Shown here piece by piece: positions 28,901 to 49,013 of a DNA stretch of 64,000 nucleotides. Source of the stretch: Perna viridis (lineage: Eukaryota); assembly GCA_037379345.1 (NCBI GenBank), contig CM074514.1, positions 16,244,001-16,308,000 on the forward strand. The letters run 5' to 3'. Under the pieces are notes generated by a model. That model made no database searches and was not told the origin of the DNA. It saw nothing but the letters and a program-made list of their open reading frames with translations. Numbering within the stretch: the first letter of the stretch is position 1; the number at the start of each line of letters is the position of its first letter. Made by a program: the position numbers and the translations under genes.

Positions 28901-31900
28901 ATCAAAGTGCAAAAGCAACAACATCATCATGCATTCTCGTTCTATGAAGAAAACTGCTTTACCATCCTAAGGAATAAATGTAGCGTGCATCATTTCCTAT
29001 TCCCCGCTATTCAATGATCAAGATCATGCTTAAAAGAGACATCCAAACAAGTGCTGGCCGACACACTTATGCAATTAGAACTTCACAGATTGAAAAAACG
29101 TATGTAGCATTAAACGATAAACAGTTAATGATAGAGTCATCAATTATAAAGACAAAACTACTATAAACCCATACGTATGAGGCAGAGTAATTCAAATTCC
29201 TGATATTTGTAGATTTGCTAAATAATTTAAGCCCTCGAAATTATATTAATAAAAATAGGAATCTATGGCACCTACACGTATCTCCATAGCGCTAACCTTA
29301 AATCACCTACATGTATCTCCATAGCACTAATCTTCAAGCCTCATTTGAGTTAAACTTAAATTTTAATTTTGGCAAAGAGTTCTTCAATTTATCAGTTTTT
29401 GGATATGATTTTATGTCATCTTTTTTCTACTTTAATACACCAGGTAATTGTTTTGATGGCATTAAAAAGGAGTAGTACAATTTATGAGTTACTACTAAGA
29501 ATACTTTTAAAGTACGAAGTTGTGCGCTAGTATTTATTGTGTAGGACTCAGATATTTTGAAGACTTGTTAGGCATATACAGACATGTACATATTGAGTCG
29601 TGACAAACTGATTAGACGTCAATATTAGTCATGCTTAAACTATTATCTACAAATTTTAAGTAAACTGTAAAGGTATAATATTTGTTTCGAAATCTGTATA
29701 GTCCATGCCGCACAGATCTGACAAGCAATTACGATAACCAAAGCGCCCATGTGCACGAACTGAAATTCACTAAATCCTAAATTCGCTCATGCGCTCTGAA
29801 AACTAACTCTTATCTCCTTTTCCTTTCTTGTCTGTAGTTCCGTCTGAAACAATAACCAAATATATATCAGATATTGTAATGGTGAGACAAACGCAGAGTA
29901 AACTGTAGATTCTTATACTTTTTATGTTAAGACGTAAGCAAGATGATTGTCTGAATACTCACTAATGCATGGGGCTATCGGAGATTTGCTTTGCTGGTAC
30001 CCATTGGCACACCGGTTACAAGTTAGGCCGGTAACTCCATCTTTACATGGGCATTGTCCAGAAGTCTGGTTACAAGTCTTCCCCAGGGCGCCAACAGGAT
30101 GACAGTCGCATGCTATAAGATAGAATATAGTTAACTTAACATGTGTTTATTAAAAATTGGGGATCTAGTTAACCTTTTTATTTTATAATACGATATTTTG
30201 TGAATTAAAGTATACAGTAACAGTGGTTAACACAGTAACAAACCAGACTATTGAATAGTGAGCATGTTAAAGTCAATATCTTATGTTACAAACACACTAC
30301 ATGTTGAAGTTTGATTCTGGTAAACATCACCTTAAGTGAAATAACAACAACGATGTCACATCTTGGTGGAATTTATAACGTAATTAAACAACTTTATACA
30401 AAGTCCAATGTATCTTCACGCAAATACGGAAAGGGAAACTACGTGTTAAATACATATTAAATCTATGACCAGCTTCATTATCATATCAAGTTCCTTATTA
30501 CATGAAATTTATATACTTTTTATGTAATTAAGGGTAAAAATTAAATCGTGAAAATGAAGATGAAATGGATCTGCGATATTTATATAACACTGGACGATAT
30601 AATCCAGGACCGGTCAATGTTTTGTATATCATTTCAACATCAAATCCGACTTGGGGTCTCACCTCGGTCTTCAATGAACATTAATTTATTACCGAACTTC
30701 AGAACAGGGAAATATACCATACAAAAGTATGTGAGCTTTGTGTTCTGCATAAATGGTTGCCAAAAAAATTGTAAACTGTATAGGACGCATTACTGTATGA
30801 ATAAGCAATTCATACAGTAATGCGTCCTATACAGTTTACAATTTTTTTGGCAACCATTTATGCAGAACACAAAGCTCACATACTTTTGTATGGTATATTT
30901 CCTGTATACTGTATTTATTACTGGCATTACTGTATGAATTGCTTATTGTCAAAACAGGAAGGCAAAACGTGAAAAATACACTTGACAAGAATTCGGTGTC
31001 GTATCCGATACTGAGTCAGAGTTTAAACTTTTCCTACTAGTTTTACCATCGATAGCTTGTGGTAAGATTCCGGGAGAAACACTGAATTCATTTGTTGTGC
31101 GTCTGTAGACAGCGACATTTTCCTTTATCTTTGAATTTAAAAAAAATCGATATGGACTTACGGAACGAACTTGTTATAAAAAATCCGAGAAAAATGTGTT
31201 GTAGTAAAAAAGAAATGACGGCTAATATACTTCAACCTTGTAGTGTATATAATAAAATCAAGGACTTGTGTGGTTTTGGTGTGTTCATTGTACATTTATC
31301 CAATAATACATTTGCAAGGATATTGATGAAAAAAATACTGGTTCTGCTCGCATGGTTTCAAATTGGCTGCATTAGATTTATACCTTTATCAAACTTCAGG
31401 TTTTATAGATTTATATTCATGTTCTAAAAGTGAAACAGAATGTACCTATTTGTTAAAATTTACTATTTACTTTTATATTAGTTCAGTGTAAGGTTTAAGG
31501 AGGGTAGTAATTAACAATTAAAATCAAACCTAACTGTGAAAACGAACGATCACTTTACCAGTAGCGAAGGTTAAAAGACTTGAACAACTTTACTTGTCAG
31601 ACTTGGAGAGCAATCTTATTTTTTTAATTAGTGTCAAGAATACAAAATGTCCAGTTAAACAACCGAGGATGGGCATAAATTAAAGAAAGTTCAGACATGA
31701 CTGGGAAGGATTCATGGTGGTTCTCTTATCATTTTCACATTTGAAGAAACCAGGTTATATAACCAGATATTGTACAAGGAAACTAAAAAGTCGGAGCACT
31801 GTAAATAACGTGTATTGAGAATTAATTAAAGGTGTGAAAACTGTAATCTAGATTCGATGTCAATGTTTACACAATAGAAATTCCACTGAGGAGGTCTAAT

Positions 31901-34900
31901 TCAGCGGTTAATCTGAAAATTTTCAAGTAGCAATATTATCGTTAATGAAACATGCGTTCATCAAACCATGATATTTATTTGAAAAGAAATCTTTGTCCAA
32001 TTTCTCAATATGGGTTTAGGTGTAAACCTCTTCAGTTTAGTTCTCAAGCCACTGGTTTCTATATAAGCTGGTTTCTTTGGTTGATGACAAAGGTAGAAAT
32101 GCCTTAAATCTCCTCGTTCCATGCAATGTCACACCAAGATTAAGACGTGGATGGTGTTTATACAAATATATAAATACCTTCCATGAATTACTGTTGGGTG
32201 ATATAATATCATTCAATAAAATGACTTGGATTTTTTTGTTTTCTACAAATCTAACACATGTTTTAGTATGATTTATCTCAATAAATTGATTAAATCGTTA
32301 AAATTTATAAACCAATGAATAGCATGAATCTAGATGATGATAAATATATTGTAGCAGTTTCAAATGCACACGATATGCTCGTCATAAGACTGTTCAGGTT
32401 TCTAACGAAGTATTTCACCTTACAACAATGTTTCCTTAGTCGTGTGTTGAAATAAGCAGAAAAAATGATAATTACATTAATCCCTTAAACCTTTTGATTC
32501 ACAAGTTCACGCGCTTGTGCATCGCAAATACATCTTTGAGCTTTCATACAATGATGACAGTATTATCTTAAAGGCTAATATAGAATTTACATCAAAATGT
32601 TCTTGAGATAAAAAAAAAACTTGTTTGCTAAACTCGAATAATCACTGTCAAATTTCGTAACAATTATATAGCTTTACATATGTAAAACTATGATTCCAAG
32701 TAACATAAACATCATAAAACTTCACAGTGGTACAATCATTTTTTTTAAAGTACAAAAATACTCCCAAAATATTTTTCTCATTAATCATAATGTGAAAATC
32801 ATCTGTTGAAAAAAAAACTATCTTCTGGTGTTTTATTTCAAGAATGTTCTACTGAAGCTATCGTCATATTGTGTTGACACGATATCAAAACACTTCATAA
32901 CATTACATGTCAAAAATACAAAGAAAAGGAAACCAATTTTGTACAAATGGTGGGTTGGAACATGTGTCAAAATGTAAAGATGAGAAATCCTCTAGGTTGA
33001 ATGAAGTAACGTTCTTTTCAAAATTAAGAACCGTATGGTTTTAATTAGTTTTACTTTTAAAATATTTATACGAGAAGACCTAATATTATTTGTTTGCAGT
33101 ATATATATAAGTTTTCAAGAAAACAGTATACATGTACATTCTAAAACCATATTACCATTGGTTTGGCCTTTAAGAATATAAATGCACATACACATATAGA
33201 ATTATATTAGGGACTCTTAGAAGTTTTCTGAACAAATATAAAACTCAATCAATAGGAACATTAATTTCAAGTTTAAATTTAGTTAAGTAAAAATGAATGA
33301 AAGAATTTTACGACAGGGTGTAACTTTTGATAACACAGATTTACCATTACCATAGTAACGCGACGTTGTAGCACGGGTTTACAAAGAACTAGACTTACAG
33401 AAGAAATGTAACATATATCCATCGCTAAAGACTACATTGTACCAATAACACAATATCAGTTAGTGCATTTTTATACTACACTGAGTAAAGTTTCACTGAA
33501 GTTCGTCGAATGATTTAAGACAATATCGTGTGTGAATTGCAGTATCTGACAGCAAAGATTGATATAATTCCTTCATACCGTCATTAGGGGCTACTTGATC
33601 ATATTATATTTATAGAGGCTATAAATGACTAAATAGTATAAATCCCAGATAAATAGGAACTTCAAAAATAGTTCCTCTATTCCATTTAATGTCTTTTTGG
33701 GGACGTGCATGCATATATAATGTATGTGTTTTACATTTCCAAACACACGAGGTTCCTCTCTCCGCGAATAAACCAGAGCTTTGCAAGCAATCTAAAAGCT
33801 GCACTCCAAATCATATTTTAATTTTAAGCTCATGAGCTTAGCATTTCCAAACAAAACATTTAAATAATTGAAGCTTTAAACAAACACAAGAATTATGAGA
33901 AGTGCAATCATTAGAATTCATGCATTTACTTGTAAATATTGCCTGAAAGATATAGTCACATTTAACATAGACAGACATGTTTTCTTGAATTCTGGAACTA
34001 TCGACCTAGACACAGTACAAAATATAACGCAAAAAAAAAATGTAAGTACCAAATATGAATACTCAAATTGTCAGAAACACAGTTTGAATTGAACAAATAC
34101 AAAGGAAGGTAAGCGGGGTAATAAAATTGCGTGTGAATAGCAGCATGAAAACAGAAAGAAAAATCATTTAAATAAAGATATAAAAACTAACAGAAAACAT
34201 GCATGCAAGTACAAGTACTTCAAGCGTGCAGTTATGTTGTGCTAGAGAAGAGAGGAAGACCCCATACCTCTACAGACTCTTCGATCTGTTATGTGTTTTG
34301 TTGGGTCACGGTAAAAACCCTCTTTACAATAATGACAAAATCTGCCGGCTGTGTTATGTTTACAGCGAAGGCATACTCCACCACTGCTGAATCCAGACAG
34401 CAAATACAGTTCTCTATTGAAGGTACACCGTCTTGCATGCAAATTACAGTTACATGCTGAAAGAGAAAAGGACATATGGAAGATAAGTGTTTACTATGTT
34501 CCTACCTTTGCATGCTTTCCTGTGCGTTATAGGCTTGTTGGAATCACGATAAAATCCTTCACGACAATAGTGGCAGTTCCTGCCTGCCGTATTATGTCGA
34601 CATTTCAAGCATACCCCTCCACTTGTATAACCCGACAATGTGTACAGCTCCATATTAAAGCGACACCTGCGAGCATGAAGGTTACAGTTGCAAGCTGAAA
34701 AAACAAAATACTGTTAAAATTCAATCAAGATGGAAAATCAAAATACATGTGAATCTCCATAATTTATCTTTAAATCATATTTACGTTCATTTTCTACACG
34801 CCTGTAATTCAATTTACGTTAGTTATTTATATATTTAACAAGAACACATCAAATTTTACAAGTACTGATAGCATTCCTAAATCAATCTTAACATAAAATA

Positions 34901-37900
34901 GTCATTTATAATAATTGAAATGGCCAATGCAGAAAACAGTTTGGGTCATTTTTTAAAGTGAAAAAGTAAAAAGGTTCTTATTTTCGAACTATCCTTCTAT
35001 TCAGGTACATGTACGATTTTATTTTTATGCAGTAACTTCTTCTCATTTTGCATGGAATTGTGATAACTGCTAAATAAGTATATTTATGGCATATTTGAGG
35101 CAAAGGACCAAATCTTGTATCAATTCAACAGAGCCAATGAATCGTAAAGGTACATGAATAGGTGAACACCTGGGCTGACACCACATGGACTATTTAGGAG
35201 AACTTATTATATCTTCAATGATAATGTTAACACGTATGATTTATTTCTTAAATTAAATATTATTTACACAAATATAAAACAATGAATAGTACGCGACATG
35301 TATCTATTATTTCTATGCTTTAAACTATTACATTTTGAGATGGGACACAAACGGGGTTTTACATGTAAAGGCGAAAGCTCCTTTGACCTATGGTTGGTCA
35401 AATGATACTTCCATGAATTTTTTTTATTTTGTTGATCAGGAGCCTATTTTATTTTTCTTGTTTTAAAATATTCTTGCGAGTTTATTTAATTTCTAATTTA
35501 CAGTATTCCAAGCTATCAAATGAATCTGTTAGGCCACCAGAGAACACAAACTCGAGGATCTCATATACAATATATACGTTCAACCATCTAAATGGGTCAA
35601 ACTACAAGATTCTTGGCAATATACCCCTATATACATGTTATGGAAAAGTAAACGATAATTAGAATTTTAAGATCAAACGGACCTCGATCTTATTCACGGG
35701 AGGTAATTCTGGGTATCAAATTACAATTAATGTCCCCGTATCATAGCCATTCGTCATCTTATAAGAGAAATTGACTATTGTCAAGGGATGGATTCTTTTT
35801 AATTGTACTAAATCAGACGATCATTACAGATACTTTTACAACTTAGCGTATGAATAATCAAGATAGTTTTAACTAAATGACCTTTCCAGGCTCATAAAAC
35901 GGATCGGGTAGCATCCTACCTCTCCACAAAAGAAAAGTCTTCCAACCCAATAGCGTGAGAGAATGATGCATAATATAGATTGAAGTTACCTTACACAATT
36001 GTCACAAAAATAATCCATTGTTTTACTTCGTTAGTTATTTTACAAATCTTAAATTATGTTTTTAGTTAATTTATCTATTTGATACATTATACAATTATTT
36101 CTATAAAGAACAAAAGTATCTTTGGATTGCCATTTTAAAAAAAAACAACTTTTTTTTTTTGAAGTTTTATCTCTGCAAGCGAATAACACTTTGGTCACGT
36201 ATACTACAGTACACTACCGACATCATTCATCATCTAGTAGTCATACAAGTACCTTAAACGGCTACAGAAAGTACATATATCCATGAACTAAGTACATGTA
36301 GTATCTTGAAAGAAACAAAACAATGAATATTGATACGTTTTATGTGAGTCGTTTATTATATTTTTCAGTTATAATTCAACTTTCCTGTTTTTGTAGACAA
36401 CAGGAGTGCAATGGAAAGTGTAACTCTCATTTATAAATTTAAAAAAAACAATGTCAAAAATATTATGTTTGGGTGTGTATTACGGAAGAATTTTATTAGG
36501 AATTTACGATTAATCGATGATTCAATACCTAACACAACGCTGCTGGAATTACGGGTTATTTCTATAATCCTCAACATGATTGATTTCGAAATAAGTCATT
36601 TGGACCGTTGTCTTAAAAAAAAACTGCTCCACTTTGTCGCCTAACTTAGCAGGTACAATACCACAAATTGTGAAAGTAAACAGATAATGACGTTTTTATG
36701 ACCAATTTATTTTACGCGATTGTTAACCTTTCTAACAAGTACAATACAAGTATTACGTTAAAACTTTATTTTGTACATGTATAAAATAAAAAAAAAAAAA
36801 AAAAACAAATGTGGAAGAGAAATAACTGTTTATGATTGGACAGTTTTGTTGTTATTTTTCATTTGAGATCAGATTTATTTGGTAAGCTTGGTATATGTTT
36901 AAAACCTTAACATTTTTTACATAACGAATGTACAATATAAACGTATCAGTTTTTAAACTACTGTTTTTTAAAATGTACGAAAAAATTGCGCTGAGAATGA
37001 TGTATTTCATGCCCACTGATTTCTGCAGGTATAGTATAGACACCTATCAGATGTTTATCATTGTAAATCTAGCTTTTGTTATCGGCATGCACTTGAATAT
37101 AATTTTTTGTTTGAAAATTTAATTATTCAGATTTTACACGGATAAGACAACCTGGGTAATAACCCACCTAAGGAAAGTAATTTGTGACAAGAATATGACT
37201 ATTATAGCCTGCTGTTTTCTTTAAAAGCAGCGTTTTAACAGAACATGGCTTTATAATAAACAAAATTGAGCATGAAATATGACCTGAACCGCATCTTTAG
37301 GAGAGAAATTATATCGTTTTGTATCTCTCAATGGGACTTTTTTTTTTAACGTACAGAGTTATCAAAATGGAAAGTCTAGAAAATGAAGGACTTTTTCATT
37401 CAAATCAATGTTGTTACCGTATTAATTTTCAATTAAACGATAAAAAAGTCACATTTTGATGTGATTAAATGCAAATGTAAAAACATTTTCCTATAAGGTA
37501 AACTGAAATATCTACAAGATCGCAATTAATTCAAATAGATGTGCTGTAAAGTGTTCATAATTGTACATCATGGAATTACAGCTTCAATAATGGATGTTAG
37601 AAAAGTGTCAGAACAATTTAATGTCCAGTATTTTTTTCAGGTGGGTGAAAATCACCACATGATCGGCCTACACTTACAATGCTAATATGCGTGACCGTGT
37701 TTATTGTAGTAATTCGTCCCGTAATTACACATCATAGTTCATCTATAAAAATAGTAAGCACAATTATTGAAATTTGTATTGAAGTTATAAACAGTAACTA
37801 TCTGCTCAATGGCAAGTAACCTTTCCCCACAAAAGGTAGAGAATGATAGAAACCAACACGTTTTCCTTATGCTATGTTTGTGTACCAGTGCAGTAAGGAT

Positions 37901-40900
37901 GACATAGAGGAAAAATAATTATCAAACTAGTTTAATTTCATCTAAAGAGTGTAAACTGTGGAAATCAATCTGGAGTATCGGGTTCGTTGAAACCATTTGG
38001 GCATAGAAGTTATTAAGTTAAACGCCATCACAATTGTTGATATACACGTTAGTCTATATTTGCTTGGTTCAAATCGAGTGTATTTTGTCCCAAGATTTCT
38101 GCGACATAGACCGGAGTCGTTTTAATCTACATAATCCGGCTGTTACAGAGTAAAGAAGGTAACGACCCTGTTCTGATTATAGCCTAGAAAGTAACGTGAT
38201 ATTCCGTTTGATATTTTAACCATTTTGCATCTTATGTTTGACGACATTTTAAGCAGATGCAAACAAGGTTTTAATGTCAATCGAAACGATAATTGGGTTC
38301 AGACTCAGAATAAAGACATCCAAGTATAATAGCTTAAGTCGTTTTCTCATCCTTAACCCTATACCCTCCGTAATTACATTTCAATATATAGCTTGATAAT
38401 TACAGAATTGCCGAATATCTATTGCGACGGGTAACCCGTATTTGACTTCGATATCATTAAATAAAGATTACTATTAAAATATCTTAAGAAATCCTTTCAT
38501 TTTGTGTGGCCATTGCTTGGACTTGAAAAGAATATCTTAGTTTTACAAAACCGGCCACGTAGAAAAATATCGCGATTTATGAGTAAAGAAGAAATCGAAT
38601 CAAGTGTCGTTAGAGCGTCAGGGGTCTGAAAAGAAGACACTTTCGCTTGCAGTGCTGTAATGCAAAATAAGAGGCGTGCACTTGAATAGCTTGAATCGTA
38701 ATTTGTCTTCTTAATTTTTCCTGCTGGATACAAGCCAGGGTGACAAAGTCAAAATTTGTGAGAAAATAGTCGGAGATGATTTGTGTGGTGTTAAGATCTA
38801 AAGTTAAATGCAATAAAATTGAAGATCATGAATAAGCAGAAGTGAGAATGAGAGTTTAATAAATGGTTATATGATAGCAGGAAATAAGAGATGAATTTAG
38901 ATTTAATATTTGTATGATTATTTCAGTACAAATTCGTTAGGTTGGAAGTTCAAAGAGTATTTCATTTGCGGTCATAATGAATCTTTATGAGCCTATGAAT
39001 ATATCCCATCTATGACACACATATACAGAGACCTAATATTGAATTCCTATGCAAATATATAACAATAAAGTCTAGCAGTTATCCGACCCCTTGTTTGTGA
39101 TAGTGGTTTACATGCAACATTCAGTAGTCGTTAATTTTGATTTGATTCATATGTCAAATAACGTTAAAATAATTGTACAGAAAGTCTCCACTCAAATACA
39201 TGTATGATGGACATAGGCGGATACAAAGGGGACAGGGCCTTTATGCACGAAAAGTTTGGTTGATTATATAGTAAAAATTGAAAATCACTGAGTGCCCCAA
39301 CCCTAAGCCAGACATCCAATGGTATTTTGCTTAAAAAATGTATAGAAGTGTTAAGCAATTTCAATAAAATGTAAATGTAATACAAAGTCCCTGCTGATTA
39401 ATCGCTACATGTATGGTGTTCATGGCATTATTAATTGAATATGGAAACATATAATAATATAGCAAGGAACAAAAAAGTCACTATTTACATTTACAGTACA
39501 TGTACTCTACCATCGGTTTATACACATTTACAGTACATGTACCTTACTATCGATTTATACACATTTACAGTACATGTACCCTACTATCGGTTTATACACA
39601 TTTACAAGAGCAGTCTTAAACTCTTATAACGGGCATTTTTGTCAGTGAAAACTATGTTCAGTACACTTTAGTGAGTCGAGCTGTAGAGTTACTTTCCAAG
39701 TACCGGACATTCAAATCATTATATTCTTGTAAAATATTGGCAACATATAGTTATGTCACCGACTGTTTAATCAAGTTTTGGCTTACAACTGAAGGTTTAA
39801 AATGTATCATGGGTTTGTTTATTTCTTACTCCAAAGTGAGTAACACAGGAAGCTTAATACGGCAAGGATAGCTGTGCTAGTTTTTAAATTAAACAATATC
39901 GAAATTCTAAGTAAACAAGTGTTAGTAGAAATCGTCATTATGTTTGTTCTAGAACTTGTTTACAAAGTAATATCAATAAATACGAATGAAGAAATAAAAC
40001 AGGTTTACATAATGGTGGGACTGCCTACACATGAATAGACCTCATAACTTAACATAATGGTGGGACTACCTTTGCCATGAACACAGACCCTATAACTTTC
40101 ACATAATAGAGGGACTACCTTTCCATAAAAATAGTTCCTATAACTTAACATAATTGAGGTACTACCTTTACATGAACAGACCCCATGACTTTACATAATG
40201 GTGGGACTACCTTTACATTAAAATATACCCCATAACTTTCACAAAAAGATGAGACTACTTTACATGAAAATTGATCCCTTAACTTAACATAATAGTGGTA
40301 CTACATTGAGATGAAAACAGACCCCATAACTTTACATAATGATGGAACCACTTTAACATGAAATAGACCCCATAACTTTTACATAATGGTGGGACTACCT
40401 TTACTTGACAACAACCCGTGACTTTCATATACATATGAAACGATCCTTTATATGAAAATAGATCCCATAACATTCATACTGTACATGTATATGGTGGGCA
40501 TCCCTTACATGAAAATAAACCCCATAACATTCATTGAATGGTGGGAATACTTTTACATTAACATAGATCCCATAACTGTGACATAACGGTGAGACTATCT
40601 TTACAATGAAACAGACCCCATAACTTTCACATAACGTGAGACTACCTTTATAATGAAACAGACCCAATAACTTTTACATAATGGTATGATTACTTTTATA
40701 TGAAACAGACCCCCTAACTTTCACATAAACGGTGGTACTACTTTAACATAAAAATAGACTCAATAGATTTCTTGATTTTGAATCACCATGACCTTTCCAG
40801 CTGTATTTTGTACTTGTATGATGATAGACTTGTGTACTTTCTATACCAGTTTAATTTTATGTGTTTCTGATATCTGAACAATAAATTCCTACTTTTCATA

Positions 40901-43900
40901 TCATTCAAAATAATGTTTACATAGAGTTTAATACAGGAATATTCAAGATAGTTAGTGAGAAGACAGAGATTAAAATTCTTCTAGCTCTAACTAACAGCAA
41001 GAGTAGAAATCTGAACTAATTCAATTCAGTTCAGTTTTAGAATACCATATGAGCCATTGTAGGTTTATCCGAACTATTGAATGACAAAGATTTGAATAGT
41101 TGTGCATAAAGATTCACAAGACAAAATATTCCGTTGGTATCCACTCTACAAGTTTAGCTTAGGTTTCCACCATAGTTCCTGGTGCGCTGTCTATGAGCAC
41201 ATCAAGTAGAACTAAAAATTTCGGTCTAGTACGGCGCATGAATCATATATAAATGAAGGAGAGAAATTTGACCTATTAAAATTCAGGATCTTCAGCACGC
41301 TGACATAAATATTTTTTTTTAAAATGTATTTTTGATTTACAATTCAGATTTTGCTATAGGTCTTTTATACAATAATCAGAGGTCACAGATAGTTAAAATC
41401 AAAGCACCGTTTAAGTTCAAAGGAGATGTGAGCGTGCATACTGGGAACAGACAGATAAAGCAGGCATAATTATAGTCTATCAATTACTATCATATAAATT
41501 TTGATTTTTGTCTTTGACCTTTGTTTGGGTACTTACATCAACTGTTGTCAGTCTTAGCACCTTTAAATACATGTAAATACATGATGTAAATTAAATTCAT
41601 TGCATAACAAGCTTCTGTATAATGGTATGCTTTGATATTGTAAATTTATAGGTGGGTTGGTGGTATGATGTATTGTGTACTCCAGACATTGATGAGCTTC
41701 TATACGCCGCTATAAATCAATTTTTTTATTTTTTTTCGTCTACTGATTTTATTCATGAAATTTGATTCAACAAGAAGTCTACTCCTTTCCCGAGTTTACT
41801 GAGAAAACCACAAGAGCAAGGTCAGACAGAACAAATCTTACTGAATGAATTGTCCTACAATATAAACTAAAACAAACTCGTTCTAAAGATAATGACTGAA
41901 GGGTCTCTGAAAGTACTGCCTAAATATAGATAAGTTTTGTACCACCTTAAAGTGAAACAAATCTAATAGCAGGTCCTTGTTACATAGCTGGGCTTTTGTT
42001 TGTTGAACATAAATTTAGAGCGACGATAAGGCACGTTTGGTTGTACATCTAAATCAAACATCGTTGAACACCTTACACATAGGTTTATCATATTAGAATG
42101 GTACTATACTGTCAAATATTTCAATATACAACGGCAAATCATATCGTCCAAACAAACTTGTAAGTCTGGGTCAACAATATCGTCAAAAGATGGTACTTGA
42201 ATTCACAAATCGTAATGCCAATGACATGAGAAGTTTAAAATGACTCAAATACAAGCGAGCGCTACTGTACGGTGCTGTAAAGATAAACTGAATTCACGAA
42301 ATAAGGTAATGTGAGGTCACTATTAGAAAATACAGACAACACTTCAGAGTAATCAAGCTTATTACTTTAATGGACAACTCAAAAATATATTTACTGTTAA
42401 AAACTAAGATATCTGTTATTGATCAATATATCACTTGATCACAACACTGTATATATGTGCTAAATATGTATATTAAATCCTTTGTGAAACTGCCCAAAAT
42501 ACCATTATTCAGCTTTTAGTTAATATCACTTGTGCAGATTTTTATATGAAATAGCTCCGAAAAAATATAAAGGCTCAGCTATTTAAAGTTTAAATTTCAC
42601 ATGCATTTATATTTTCAGTGTATGCTTTGGTGCATGCAAACTGCAGTCAAAATAAACAAATAACTCGTGATATAAACAGGTAAAATTGGTAAAGACTTTT
42701 TCTCTAAAATGCTTCGAAGAACTTGAGAGTTGCCAATTGTTAAGCTTATGTTTTATTCAATTCTTCAATCAGTGTCTTCATTAAATCTTATAATTTGAAT
42801 GGAACTAAAATGTAATGTAGTTACTACAGACAAATTGTTATTTTCTCTTCATTTACGTCAACTTCATTGCAGACTTGGCTGGAGGGAACAAATAACGATG
42901 AAACTGTTCCCATTCACTGTTAAATGGCGATATAAAACTAGCAAAAATAGGCACGGATAATTGGTTTAATACTGATAAATTACTCCTTCCCTGGCTTTAT
43001 CTAGAATATTACTACTCGTGTGCATGATAATGCATCAAAATTTCGTAACGATGAAGACCTTGTAACACAAGTTAGACAGAGAAAACGGCTTCTGTGTCGA
43101 TTGGAGATATGGACTGATAGCAACAGATAGCAATAGAGACATTGAATCGCTAGAATGACAATGAGAATTCACAGTGAGAGCTTAATTGTCATGGGCGTTA
43201 CCCCTACCAAAACTCACCGATAAAACTACATGTATGTACGTCAATACTGCTATCCGTTTACTGTCTTCGTCCCTACTACCACATACACCAAACAGAGAAC
43301 ACTGCAGTGCGTTCATATGAAAAGCACAGTTAAGTAAATAGTGTTGGATATGAGAAACTCTTCATTATACTTACTGCTTAGATTGATCTTTTAAAATTTA
43401 ATTAACTGAAATCTTAGTAGTATTGCTTATAGGTCACATAGAGAATTTTATGACAAAAATAAGCGAAAATTGCAATACGTCATTTTTTTCAAAAAGAGTC
43501 TTAAAAGATGTCAAAGTTCTAGAAAATCGGTGCATGTATTATACAGTGTTAGTAAATAGACTCGAAGCAGTAAAAGTAATATAATTTTTCATTCCAGCTC
43601 CTGTGAACAAACTATGATTGCCGTGAAAGTGAACGTCCTTTCTAGAAATGCGTCGAAATATTCGTTGTAATTCCCGTGTCTTGATAAATTTTCTGAACAA
43701 ATTAGAAACATACTCTTTATCGAGTGCATTGTGTGATTTGGTATAAACATACCTGAAACTTACAATGATAACAACAGAACAGTACGGCTATATGTAACGA
43801 AAATAACACGTGTAATCAGCTTTTGTAACTATATTATGATCACAAAATCTTAAAATAGCTTAAAACAGTTTTGTTTTTGGTCATTAGAGAGTTTTTTGTT

Positions 43901-46900
43901 AATTATTTTATCATTACAAGTACTTTCTTTATTATTGATAGTGTCAGTTTTTTTTTATCATGAACTGTTTTCAAGACAGTGCCAAAATAGAAGATCACTT
44001 ACCACCCAATTATTAAACCCGTGGACAAAACATATAAAAGGCCGAGAGTGCTTGATGTAAACAGTGGGATGTCAGAGGAATATTGAACTTAGATATAACC
44101 AGTGTATTGTATCAACATTCCCAATCTTTATGATCCAACCTCGACTATAATCCCTACTGTCGATTAATATCTATCTATCAGATCCAGATTTTTTGTTTTA
44201 CACTATATTAATGATGAGGACTGATTAGACATTGATTTCCTACTTCGTCATGACGCGTGCACTAGAAACTGTAAAGTTTAATATACATTTTAAGTTATAT
44301 GTTTAAGACTCGGCCCGTTATTTCCCATTCTTCTCTTCGATGTAATAAAATGTAATTCCAAATGAATTATGTAACAGCTTAATAATAACATTAAGTTAAA
44401 ACCAACTTAGGTCTCTATTCTTACCGGAGTATGTCTGGAGAAATATTACAGATTTTCTACAGAAAACCATCAAATTATTTCGGAGATATCTTTGATTGAA
44501 TAGTATCTCGTGTTCGATGAGAATAAACATTCTTCTTTTAATTTAATTATTGTTAAATGGTTAAAATTTGCAGATAAACCCCTTTTGTATCGATGAAGAC
44601 GTTCTCAAGAAAAAGTCAATATTTGTTTATAGTTAAATTTCTATATTTTTTCTCCAAACTTTGGTATTTGCCCAAACAGATACAAAAAGAAATCTATAAT
44701 CAAACGTAGAAGCTTCAATTTTAATAAAAGTTGACCAAGTACGATTAAGCCACCAGAAAAATTCAACAAAGTCACGTTCTACAAACCCAAGGGGCGTTTT
44801 TTAGGTGAGCAGTACTGTTTTGCAAAATAATTGTTTTCAAAACTTCGAAAGAGAAGTCGTTTTTGCAATTAGTTAATTTGCACCGAACTTCAAACTTTTG
44901 AGATGCCAATTAAAAACTTTTTTCAAAAAAGAAGCAGAGACATACTGCCAATTATCCTATCCAACACGTATACACGAGTTGGAAGTAAAATTTTGAATGA
45001 CGTTGCAAATTTCAGATGTCACATTTGTGGACTTAAAAATTCTACTAGGAAAAATATGACCAGTTTTAAAACCAGATATGGAGGAAAAGTATAATGAAAA
45101 ACTACATGAGAGCGTGTCATATGTCGCTTCAGAAAACATCTTGCCGTCCAATGCTATTTTGAAATGGTATGGACTTAGATAAAGTATGTCTTGAGACATT
45201 AACTTAATCAATGAATTCGAGAAGAGAAATATTTTCTGTTGATGCAGACAGACTTTGATGTAGAGAAGATATTTATTGTAATTTCACGCCATTGATAGGC
45301 TATTAAGTGTTGTAATTAGATTTATCATTTGGACAAATTGTTACATCCCACTTGCCTAAAGGGGCCTCTTAATTATCCCATTAACACAAAACTTGAAAAA
45401 GACTAGGCGATACTTTTGACACTTATCTTGTGACGCGTTATTGTAAGCAGTAACCCGGGGTAGTTTTACGATCAGTAATTAAAACGCATATAAACCGATC
45501 ACAATCCATGATATTGTTAAAGTACCACGTCCATTCATTTCGTACCAAAATAGTGATTAATACATATGATCGCTTTCAATCCTTGCTTGTGTGAGAGGTT
45601 TATTTTGCCATTCAAGCAGGTGTGATAAGACCATTAGCTACTAAATATACAAACTCCTAATTGTGTAATAATCCTAAACCTTTCAAATTCCACTGTTTAT
45701 AAATGCTTTTAATTTTCATAAAACATTAATCAGGTACTTCAATTAAAGATTAAGGTTTATATAGCAGATTAATGTCAAAAATTACTTTTACATTTTTTCC
45801 AATTATGTAAAAATTTAATTTATTTTATATGTTTTGTTACTGGAAAGCTTAGCATTTTTATTCTGTGGCATTTATGAAAGATCTCAATTTGGCTTAGTTA
45901 TCTAAACACACGTCAGAAGTTTGTGTGGTTTGAAAATAAACGAAAGGAAGAAAGTATGAACTGAACACCTGCGGAATTACTTCAAAGCAATCAAGGCTAC
46001 TTTACATCGGTAAAATATTACACGTTATGACGAGTGTCTTTGAGAGGCTACATTTATAGGATCTTTATGCTTAAACGTGCTTTTATTCTGTTTAGAGATT
46101 CTTAACAAGTATATGGTAAATGTATTCATTAGAGAGATATTTTTTAAACAGGGAAATTGGGTGAGGAAATTATCAACTAAACATATTTCTCCCTCCCTAA
46201 CGATTCGGCTAAGTTGTCAATTAATTGACCTGCGTCTCATGTTCGTTATTTCTTTTCTAAAAAAAAAAAACAATATCCTGTAAACTTTCTAAATCGTGGT
46301 AATATGAAATAAATTTCGAAAACCCAAACAAAGCACTCAAAATAAGAGCAAAAATACTATAATTTAACTATATCTAAAATTTAAAAAAAGTTGTATCATG
46401 AATATAAAATAGATGATCATATGTATGAAAACAAATCTCGGGTTTACAAACTTTTTATTTTAGAGTTACAGTTTAATGTAAATATTTACCAAATTGATGT
46501 TGACTAATGTCAACCACCAGCCCATGCATGGTCAACATATAGACATAAAGTATATATACACATATTTAATAAGTCGTCCTAAATTTTGTATCGAGTAAAA
46601 TATACACGAAATAAAACACCTTAGGTTAGTAATATAGCGGCTAATGTTACACTCTGTTCTTAAATGCTCAATGAACGGTTCAAGATATTTTGGTATAGTT
46701 TTAATGTATAATGGATGTTCAGCATGCAAAAATGAATCAGCTAAATAGTTTATAAGGCTGTGATTCGGACGTAAAAATCAAGTTAAAAATCAATGAAATA
46801 TTTCCACACAGGGTCGTGAAATATGATTCAATACCTCACAAAATGTTTGGAATTTTTACGCTGACCTTCTCACTTTGAGCAATACAAAATACTTGGTGTT

Positions 46901-49013
46901 TGAGATGAGATTGTGTTGACCCGTGATACCTTTTATTACAAAGAGGTGAAGTAGGATGCAGTTTATGGTAAAAAATTAACATGCATTGATAACTTGCAAC
47001 ATGGGTTTCAGAGGCAAGGTTCGCCAAGCATCGGCGATAAAGAATAAAAACTGGCTTGTGTTTACGGTGTACGATATCGGTACGAACATTAAATATTTAT
47101 GAACTGCTTAAAATGGACATAAATTTCTCATGAACGCCTTTCATTGAAAACAATTTACGTATACAGTCTGTAGCCTACATCAATACGCAGATAGAAAAAA
47201 GTTGCAAAGATGTCTAGCGCTGGGTATTTCATATCGTTTTCCCACTGAATAAGATTTAGAAGAATTTGTTCTATTTAATATTGAAATTCATATCAATACT
47301 CAGATCTTTATTTTTTTTATTATTTAATGTATATGATATTTATGTAAATTATTTATTATATAAAATATGTGAATAAACTACTAAATTAGCATACAATCAC
47401 CTAGTTATAAAAAAATTATAATTTAGGAACAAATTTGTGAAAAAAAGAATTCTATTTTCCTTGATGTTATGGCGTAGTTCACACCACCTGCCTAAATAAT
47501 AAAAAATGTTTTTTCATACATATTAAACACTCAAACAAATGTTATTATCATCCAGATATTAATAATTCTACGTATAAAAATGATGTATTGCATTTATAAC
47601 GTTGGTTGAACAGTGGGTTCTTGGATGCTAGTTTGAGTTCCATCAGCGTTCTTTGGCTTAATGCCTTTCTTATCTCGTATACCTCATAAATCTATCATAG
47701 TTGCATTAAAGTATCATCATCATATCCAAACTTTAAAAAACTAATACATAATGTTGCAATAAAATATTACTTAAAAACCATTTTTTCAAGTTAAAGCTAG
47801 GATTGTCTAGTAATGTTGAACTCGAGAGATTAAAACAATAAATTTTGTTGTTAATTTTTGACTTTGAATAATGTTTCATACGTGCACTTAGGCTTCTTGG
47901 TACATATTGAATATTGCAAGTCTGAAATGACACAAATTTTACACATTTGCCTGTAAAAATCTACATTAACTCACCGACACACTCGTTGGCAATTCTGCTG
48001 GTAGCACGTGCCCACGGCCTGTCAAAATGGAATGGTTTACATTTTTCACATTCTGATCCCGCAGTATTGTGCTTACAATCACACACATATTGACCTTCTC
48101 GATTTGTTATGCAACGAGATGCATGACCGTTACACTTGCACCTGCCACCAACAGCAAAATCGGATAAAGAATAGTAGTAGCTCTCTCTTGCAGATTCATC
48201 GTCGTGTTCGTCTCCATAAGTATTCAGTCTGCTAAAGACTACCATAACATCGGTTGCGGTAACCCAATCTTGGAGAATAGGACTGTTGTCAAAATCATAT
48301 GCTGATGGTCTACCTTCAAGTGTGCTGAAAGCAACACGTGCTCCAGATAATGGCTCTATATTGCTGTATGACTCTGTGCATAAAGCCTCTTGTTCGTTCG
48401 CTTTTGTCACTAAAGCTCGTGGAGATTTGGAATACATTTTCTTACAGTTACTCGAATAATATTGGAATGGTACCCATGTTTTCCCATAATCCATACTTTT
48501 AAATAATGCCATGGAATCTGGTCTCGCAGAACAAAACTGTAAACTAATGTAAGTGATCTCATATTTCTTCCCCAAAGAAAGTTTCAGAGTAACATTTTGT
48601 GGATATTGTACATATGTATTAGACATCCAACACGTTAAATTATTTGGATTATTCAGGTCAGTTAAATACGATGGTGGATGCATGCGTTTTGGATGGTTCC
48701 CGTCACAAATAAAACAATTCCGAATAACACGACCGTCTTTGTCCGTTGTAGATTTGCAATACCTAGTTGGCGGCGAACCACACGTACTGGATGCTGTAAC
48801 GTCTTTGCCAAAGGCTGCATTTACGAAATCAGGGGTACACAGTGTAGGTTCCCCTCTCTCGTTGTAACAAGGATCGGGTGGTGTTTGTTGACGAACGAAC
48901 ATATCCATATATGATCCTGTCCACGAATCACGAACACACAAACAAATTAGAACTATTGATATCTTAAGCATTTTTGTCACTAATTTTGAAATTCTCAGCA
49001 TCCATAGTCTCAT
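22581..49013 (-). CDS. Ntn1: Netrin-1 / UNC-6 orthologue (about 596-610 aa with one LE2 exon; LN-LE1-LE2-LE3-C345C)
   Basis: Exons 47975-49013, 34506-34694 and/or 34268-34456, 29963-30112, 26633-26668, 24787-24858 and 22581-22927 join in frame through phase-1 GT-AG introns. Hallmark netrin motifs: [86 protein letters not shown]. Confidence 0.97.
23534..24303. repeat. Intronic minisatellite, ~37-bp unit, ~20 copies, with a 164-bp higher-order duplication
   Basis: Consensus about AAGAACAGGGCCGGGAATAGACAAACAAATA(T/C)CACCT. The block starting at 23688 is repeated at 23852. Confidence 0.95.
24787..24858 (-). CDS. Ntn1: Netrin C345C/NTR domain, first exon ([24 protein letters not shown])
   Basis: ttttacag|GT...TAT G|gtacgt, 72 nt. 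KKYC..DY motif of the NTR domain. Confidence 0.9.
26633..26668 (-). CDS. Ntn1: Netrin linker micro-exon ([12 protein letters not shown])
   Basis: tttttttcttgcag|AA ATC CCT...AAA G|gtatga, 36 nt, phase 1-1. Gives the PCI-KIP junction typical of netrin-1. Confidence 0.8.
27938..28295. mobile_element. Palindromic non-autonomous DNA element (possibly Crypton-type)
   Basis: Imperfect fold-back at 27938-28120 (…ATCACGAGTGCC…GGCACGAGTGAT…). Same family in inverted orientation at 58161-58346. The 28160-28295 part matches 56575-56820. The family name is inference. Confidence 0.6.
29963..30112 (-). CDS. Ntn1: Netrin LE3 (V-3) exon
   Basis: cttatag|CA...ATT A|gtgagt, 150 nt. Encodes [50 protein letters not shown]. 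Absent from the ORF track. Confidence 0.95.
30708..30902. repeat. Perfect inverted repeat, 95-bp arms and 5-nt spacer
   Basis: 30708-30802 is the exact reverse complement of 30808-30902. Spacer AAGCA. Confidence 0.95.
34268..34456 (-). CDS. Ntn1: Netrin LE2 (V-2) exon, copy B (divergent tandem duplicate, likely mutually exclusive with A)
   Basis: cttttctctttcag|CA...AGA G|gtatgg, 189 nt. Encodes [63 protein letters not shown], with all 8 Cys kept. Confidence 0.88.
34506..34694 (-). CDS. Ntn1: Netrin LE2 (V-2) exon, copy A (canonical-like)
   Basis: tttcag|CT...AAA G|gtagga, 189 nt. Encodes [63 protein letters not shown]. Confidence 0.93.
39487..39606. repeat. Minisatellite, 37-bp unit, ~3.2 copies
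   Basis: ACATTTACAGTACATGTAC.CTAC.ATCG.TTTATAC at 39487, 39524 and 39561, partial at 39598. Confidence 0.9.
40004..40765. repeat. Minisatellite, ~46-47-bp unit, ~16 copies
   Basis: Consensus about TTCACATAATGGTGGGACTACCTTTACATGAAACAGACCCCATAACT with divergent copies. Confidence 0.92.
47975..49013 (-). CDS. Ntn1: Netrin coding exon 1: signal peptide, laminin N-terminal (VI) domain and LE1
   Basis: In-frame ATGs at 49013, 49001 and 48971 ([19 protein letters not shown] is signal-like). Donor ECV-G|GTGAGT at 47975/47974. Confidence 0.95.

Follow-up and report, generated by a model that had tools for sequence, protein, structure and literature searches.

How can a cell use one or the other of two adjacent exons, and not both, when joining the two would leave the reading frame intact? 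The question is raised by a pair of 189-nucleotide (nt) exons on the minus strand of a 64,000-nt stretch of DNA from the mussel Perna viridis (GenBank assembly GCA_037379345.1, contig CM074514.1, positions 16,244,001 to 16,308,000; hereafter the window, whose numbering is used throughout). The gene containing them is, from its predicted domains, a netrin of the netrin-1/UNC-6 type, with an LN domain, three laminin-EGF (LE) domains, and a C-terminal NTR domain. Exon A (34506–34694) and exon B (34268–34456) encode alternative versions of the second LE domain, LE2 (V-2), and are separated by a spacer of 49 nt (34457–34505) that runs from GT to AG. An earlier interpretation made from the letters of the window alone (the sequence-only reading) proposed that this spacer is too short for the splicing machinery to engage both of its ends at once, which would make the exons mutually exclusive. 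We find that exons A and B are used mutually exclusively, both joining the same first coding exon (exon 1) and the same LE3 exon, and that steric interference across the spacer is the best explanation for this behavior and probably its cause.

Exons A and B show the hallmarks of a tandem exon duplication, being adjacent, homologous, equal in length, and equal in phase (2 nt, 62 codons, and 1 nt). They are identical at 124 of 190 aligned nucleotide columns and at 46 of 62 residues. Both match LE2 of netrin-1 in solved structures over residues 1–62 (115 bits for A, 105 bits for B), and both score above the Pfam cut-offs for EGF_laminin and EGF_LMN_ATRN. Exon A is the version closest to the LE2 of netrin-1 in other animals, while exon B corresponds to a second, mollusc-wide version. 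Among named organisms, Mytilus species supply the closest matches to exon 1 and to each LE2 version, with 60 of 62 residues shared in the case of A and likewise 60 of 62 in the case of B. We rejected the idea that exon B is a decaying copy, as its expression is similar to that of A and its mollusc orthologues form a single well-supported clade (95/94).

RNA was placed on positions 29850–34850 from two raw sequencing runs (X21 and X22) and from the assembled contigs of two older runs, X1, which carries the same organism label, and X5, which carries a second label; a splice joint was listed if at least 3 reads supported it in a run. Both exons are joined to the 150-nt LE3 (V-3) exon (29963–30112), an open frame that serves as their common downstream partner. 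The B-to-LE3 joint (34268 to 30112) was supported by 6 and 5 reads in X21 and X22, respectively, and by one contig each in X1 and X5; it removes the 4,155-nt intron 3' of exon B (30113–34267). The A-to-LE3 joint (34506 to 30112) was supported by 5 and 9 reads and again by one contig in each older run; it removes 4,393 nt, including the spacer and exon B. Upstream, reads have loose ends at 34457 (5 in X21 and 4 in X22) and at 34695 (3 and 6), all with an identical 30 letters, which occur once in the window, at 47976–48005, adjoining the last base of exon 1. The contigs give the same picture, with each of X1 and X5 containing two 246-nt contigs that begin and end alike, in 28 letters each of exon 1 and LE3, and differ only in having A or B between them. 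The mutually exclusive use that the sequence-only reading anticipated is therefore borne out, with both LE3 joints present in all four runs and the same exon 1 letters preceding both exons. The depth ratio of the A and B contigs was 80.6:45 in X1 and 7.8:9.9 in X5.

Direct joining of A to B (34506 to 34456), which would remove the spacer and which the sequence-only reading had named as the observation to look for, was listed neither in X21 and X22 at the threshold of 3 reads per run nor in the contigs of X1 and X5. No RNA contig of X1 or X5 covers the spacer. Twenty sequencing runs were listed as containing the stretch, and 16 of these contain 0.82 of 40 sampled words; a share of 0.80 would be expected if the missing words were just those that overlap the spacer. 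Among 193 netrin-family proteins of at least 500 amino acids gathered from all searches, none has two LE2 domains. A netrin with four LE domains, in which both exons are constitutive, was rejected on the basis of the RNA joints and these protein models.

Reads that extend beyond the LE3 donor (29963) show two continuations, with an agreement of only 0.63–0.66. The continuation that prevails in X21 is not the one that prevails in X22, X1, and X5, which suggests a second alternative event downstream. The RefSeq netrin isoforms of related animals also include length pairs differing by 13–21 residues, such as 628/613 and 622/609. Separately, two pieces of only 21–25 letters from a 4,688-nt X1 contig match within the intron that follows exon B (31603–31623 and 32734–32758); these most likely belong to a dispersed repeat and not to a transcript of the netrin locus.

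Is a 49-nt intron unusual in this genome? A literature search of limited coverage yielded no usable length distribution for bivalve introns. We sampled introns from 11 dynein heavy-chain genes, in five 20-kilobase (kb) regions and seven 3.3-kb loci, against dynein heavy-chain proteins gathered with a single dynein exon of this genome. Introns were placed by chaining tblastn matches, and their GT/GC..AG junctions were set by reading frame and by fit to the protein. This yielded 131 pairs of neighboring matches, of which 15 were dropped for a missing piece of protein between them and 116 were resolved, leaving 114 unique introns once two double counts were removed. These range from 118 to 1,418 nt, with a median of 353.5 nt; two are 150 nt or shorter, and seven are 200 nt or shorter. 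Introns of about 49 nt, whose commonness in the genome the sequence-only reading had singled out as decisive, are absent from the sample, as is any intron of 100 nt or less (0 of 114). As a control, the procedure was repeated on 24 resolved introns that had been shrunk in silico to 49 nt, of which 22 were recovered exactly; the lack of short introns is thus not a blind spot of the method. The 49-nt spacer is far shorter than any sampled intron of this genome.

The spacer nevertheless has the parts of an intron. Its letters, read on the minus strand from 34505 to 34457, are exactly those on which the sequence-only reading was based, and its description of a donor followed by a good polypyrimidine tract and AG acceptor is accurate: the spacer starts with GT and ends with a 16-nt pyrimidine-rich run and then CAG. 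Splice sites were scored with position weights built from the 114 sampled introns. By this measure the donor of A lies at the 78th percentile and the acceptor of B at the 61st, as compared with the 79th for the acceptor of A, the 49th for the donor of B, the 14th for the donor of exon 1, and the 5th for the acceptor of LE3. The donor of A and the acceptor of B are therefore good sites 49 nt apart that were never seen paired with each other; the partner that each does use scores lower and lies at a distance of 4.4 kb or 13.5 kb. An incompatibility of the U12 type was rejected, since exon 1 has GTGAGT, A has GTAGGA, and B has GTATGG, all ordinary GT donors unlike the U12 consensus, and all three acceptors end in AG. 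The weak LE3 acceptor (30112), at the 5th percentile of the 114 sampled acceptors, is yet used by every message.

What sets the spacer apart is its geometry. Adenosines occur at spacer positions 3, 6, 7, 9, 11, 14–16, 18, 22, 29, and 31, as well as at position 48 within the AG, and any branch point within the spacer consequently lies no more than 31 nt from the donor of A. The short distance from donor to branch point noted in the sequence-only reading thus holds for every adenosine that precedes the AG. In other respects the layout is ordinary, with adenosines 18–33 nt upstream of the AG followed by the pyrimidine run.

Reading frame offers no alternative safeguard. The length of 189 nt is a multiple of three, and so messages that include or skip both exons stay in frame and cannot be policed by nonsense-mediated mRNA decay (NMD), which we rejected as the control. 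The 49 nt of the spacer are not a multiple of three; retaining them shifts the frame, and reading from A through the spacer encounters a stop at the first bases of B. The sequence-only reading had reasoned in the same way about retention of the spacer and about the joining of A to B, and on these counts it was correct.

Steric interference across the spacer, which we regard as the likely control and which the observations above support, would operate as follows. A branch point for the B acceptor located inside the spacer would be 31 nt or less from the A donor, too close for U1 and U2 to be bound together. If U1 were to commit at the A donor, the B branch region would be blocked and A would be joined to the LE3 acceptor 4.4 kb away. 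If U2 were to commit at the B branch site, the A donor would be covered, exon A would be left undefined, and exon 1 would be joined to B. The pair would then act as a two-way toggle between U1 on the A donor and U2 on the B branch site.

A spacer that serves such a function might be expected to stay short in other animals, and the sequence-only reading had suggested looking for this. Spacers of similar length do occur in other animals. An open frame from a related mussel in Logan (P0442) reads on from the end of exon A for 17 codons and enters exon B out of frame, which corresponds to a spacer of 50 nt; the last part of its translation agrees with that of the window's exon B when the latter is read in a shifted frame. 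This was the one informative protein of 50 in the open-frame search, the other 49 stopping soon after the exon or coming from animals with no visible second copy. In a scan of metagenome contigs with exon B, 6 of 80 loci carry a tandem pair of 189-nt LE2 exons in the same phase. All six spacers are GT..AG, with lengths of 46 (L067), 49 (L065), 56 (L113), 57 (L068), 69 (L070), and 76 nt (L061), and their donor-to-acceptor layout resembles that of the mussel spacer. No tandem LE2 pair with a longer gap was found among the 80 loci within the contig DNA examined. Four of the six pairs are close relatives of one another. In all eight pairs seen (the window, P0442, and the six metagenome loci), the spacer is 46–76 nt, in contrast to neighboring introns of 1.3–13 kb; in L067 and L113, for example, the preceding LE1-like match lies about 1.3–1.4 kb upstream.

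The exon pair itself is old. Among proteins found with exon 1 and the members of their clusters, 11 named species have equal-length RefSeq isoform pairs (netrin-1-like X1/X2) that differ in having an A-like or a B-like LE2, each protein of a pair holding exactly one. These species are the bivalves Mytilus edulis, M. galloprovincialis, Crassostrea virginica, Ostrea edulis, Mizuhopecten, Argopecten, and Pecten; the gastropods Patella vulgata and Littorina saxatilis; the brachiopod Lingula anatina; and the nemertean Lineus longissimus. A tree built from 43 LE2 peptides places the mollusc B versions together in a single clade (10 of the 43 rows, 95/94 support) that spans bivalves and gastropods, and exon B therefore predates the split between these two groups. 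The alignment has just 62 columns and 25 of the 39 inner branches of the tree are open; the second copies in Lingula, Lineus, and the metagenome loci may or may not share the origin of mollusc B. The same exon pair is thus already present in the RefSeq X1/X2 isoforms of molluscs, Lingula, and Lineus, which are automatic gene models and silent on the spacer and the mechanism. A literature search of limited coverage found no paper on alternative LE2 exons of netrin.

The metagenome scan brought up loci of other kinds as well. Seven contigs (L076, L082, L099, L115, L116, L122, and L126) have an LE1-like match a short way upstream of the LE2 match, and six of them (all except L126) have no AG ahead of the latter; some animals therefore seem to be without the intron that precedes LE2 in the mussel. 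Three loci (L059, L063, and L069) encode LE2 peptides of vertebrate type, the peptide of L069 being that of fish proteins, and were left out of later comparisons.

Explanations other than steric interference have to account for the same splicing pattern. The choice between A and B could be settled by regulators and exon definition, with the short spacer being a leftover of the duplication. The A:B ratio differs between X1 and X5, which points to a regulated choice, and the spacers of 69 nt (L070) and 76 nt (L061) may be long enough to be spliced. A neutral leftover, however, would be expected to drift in length like other introns, whereas the spacer stays at 46–76 nt in eight of eight pairs beside introns of 1.3 kb and more, although the B exon predates the bivalve-gastropod split. 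Moreover, the donor of A and the acceptor of B are both strong and are never paired. We therefore consider regulated competition without a steric block to be unlikely. The branch point used by the B acceptor might instead lie upstream of the A donor, in exon A or in intron 1, in which case the block would be topological and not one of spacing. This would give the same outcome and has been reported for exons 4a/4b of vertebrate OGDH; the branch motifs in the mussel spacer, judged by eye, are moreover only weak matches. Against it, the adenosines and the pyrimidine run of the spacer are placed as in an ordinary intron, and the same is true of all six metagenome spacers; we consider a distant branch point to be similarly unlikely.

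Competing RNA structures, in which a docking site pairs with a selector to activate one exon as in Dscam or 14-3-3 xi, are a known mechanism for exon clusters of invertebrates (PMC6071210). In tests confined to pairings that involve the spacer of this species, no supporting evidence was found: the best duplex of the spacer with the flanking introns was matched or beaten by those of 27 of 40 and 32 of 40 shuffled spacers, and the local fold around the spacer had a z of −1.1. In addition, a donor, branch site, and pyrimidine tract already take up much of the 49 nt and leave little room for a selector, and we judge this mechanism very improbable here. Equally slim is the chance that the exons are not strictly exclusive, and that low levels of messages containing both exons (encoding four LE domains) or lacking both are produced and tolerated. 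Both outcomes would be in frame, and the read depth is low, with about 25 LE3-junction reads in all. On the other side, no such joint was listed in the two raw runs, no such contig was found in X1 or X5, and none of the 193 protein models has two LE2 domains.

Several considerations weigh against strict exclusivity by steric interference. With a threshold of 3 reads set against 11 and 14 LE3-junction reads, double inclusion could reach roughly 15% in both samples, and contigs lose rare variants. The intron sample represents one gene family and gives no more than a rough upper limit, of a few per cent, on how frequent very short introns are. In humans, introns of about 43–56 nt are reported to be spliced with the help of special factors (bioRxiv 10.1101/784868), and shortness alone is therefore no absolute bar; that the spliceosome of this mussel cannot remove 49 nt is something we infer. 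Finally, the metagenome spacers of 69 and 76 nt may be spliceable in some animals.

Steric interference as a basis for exclusive exon choice has precedents. In alpha-tropomyosin, the exclusivity of exons 2 and 3 is reported to have been shown by experiment to result from a branch point too close to the upstream donor (Smith and Nadal-Ginard 1989). The arrangement there differs from that in mussel netrin in that the tropomyosin intron is longer and its branch point is unusually far from the acceptor, whereas the netrin intron is tiny and its mechanism is deduced from sequence and splicing pattern. A survey of human clusters used a donor-to-branch-point distance of less than 50 bp as a criterion and assigned 57 clusters (9%) to this class (PMC5740500), and in the case of OGDH exons 4a/4b the intron length is also reported to have been kept short during evolution (PMC7969005). 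As described in these reports, the human clusters and OGDH fall in the mechanistic class proposed for netrin, and they concern vertebrate genes with predicted or mapped branch points.

The closest parallels come from Caenorhabditis elegans. A survey of that species describes 29 mutually exclusive clusters, of which 22 are homologous, and five of which have intervening introns under about 40 nt that are reported as never seen excised (PMC4165533). Ten of the 29 clusters have exons that are multiples of three in length, and five of these ten have introns that are too short (PMC4165533). The pairs with such introns are let-2 exons 9/10 (30 nt), egl-15 exons 5B/5A (14 nt), bet-2, gly-5, and gly-6 (PMC4165533). 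Like these pairs, as the survey presents them, the netrin exons are adjacent alternatives with an intervening intron that was never seen excised; in the worm it is shorter than the shortest intron spliced in the species, and in the mussel it is shorter than any intron sampled. The resemblance extends to the five clusters with exon lengths divisible by three, for which NMD likewise cannot police double inclusion. Unlike the worm introns, the mussel spacer, at 49 nt, would be spliceable in C. elegans, for which the survey gives a minimum of about 40 nt, and the gene is a netrin. The argument for the mussel therefore rests on the mussel's own longer introns (minimum 118 nt, n=114). Alternative use of a tandem duplicated exon has also been described in a bivalve for the oyster alternative oxidase isoforms (PMC5589949), which resemble the netrin pair in this respect and belong to a different gene. 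The mechanism proposed for the netrin pair is of a known class, and the pair is of interest chiefly because the switch is old and is located in LE2 of netrin.

The remainder of the gene fits this description. Exon 1 (47975–49013, minus strand) encodes the signal peptide, the LN domain, and LE1. Its start is approximate, being the first ATG of the open frame, while its end was set from the donor (TCG|GTGAGT at 47975) together with the RNA loose ends placed at 47976–48005. The translated frame is 90–95% identical to mussel netrin-1-like proteins, with 90% identity to that of Mytilus edulis, for which the Pfam families Laminin_N, EGF_laminin, and NTR are recorded. Intron 1 (34695–47974), as delimited by RNA joints and loose ends, is 13,280 nt in length; in messages with exon A it is removed whole, whereas in messages with exon B the removed stretch also takes in exon A and the spacer. 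The LE3 frame and NTR-like frames are seen among the open frames of the window. Domains were assigned exon by exon.

Two observations were made elsewhere in the genome. One dynein heavy-chain gene (G000:C6:43207537-43208040) has two adjacent matches, 258 nt apart, to the same positions of AAA_6 (81–121 and 83–123), and these resemble a further case of tandem exon duplication. At G000:C4:10.83-11.37 Mb, myosin heavy-chain genes form a tandem cluster; some copies have open frames of 1,521–1,563 amino acids across the motor domain, and neighboring copies have short frames with stops between the matches.

Taken over the animals compared, the netrin pair may be an ancient binary switch. We advance as a real, if tentative, possibility that the LE2 alternative, which predates the bivalve-gastropod split and perhaps the split among molluscs, brachiopods, nemerteans, and annelids, has been kept together with a spacer of sub-minimal length as a two-way steric toggle, and that one gene would in this way supply two ligands with different receptor-facing surfaces without recourse to NMD.

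Netrin is one of the best-studied guidance cues. The diversity of netrin ligands in flies, worms, and vertebrates comes from separate genes and is not known to involve the swapping of a domain within one gene. LE2 reportedly contributes to receptor binding in structures of netrin with DCC and with UNC5. For gene annotation, the locus indicates that in this animal an intron should not be modeled between a donor and an acceptor 49 nt apart, even when both are good sites. The spacer is also a clean natural setting in which to test the steric rule beyond the model organisms. In the mussel, a single gene yields two netrin ligands that differ only in LE2, and the pair has been kept across molluscs.

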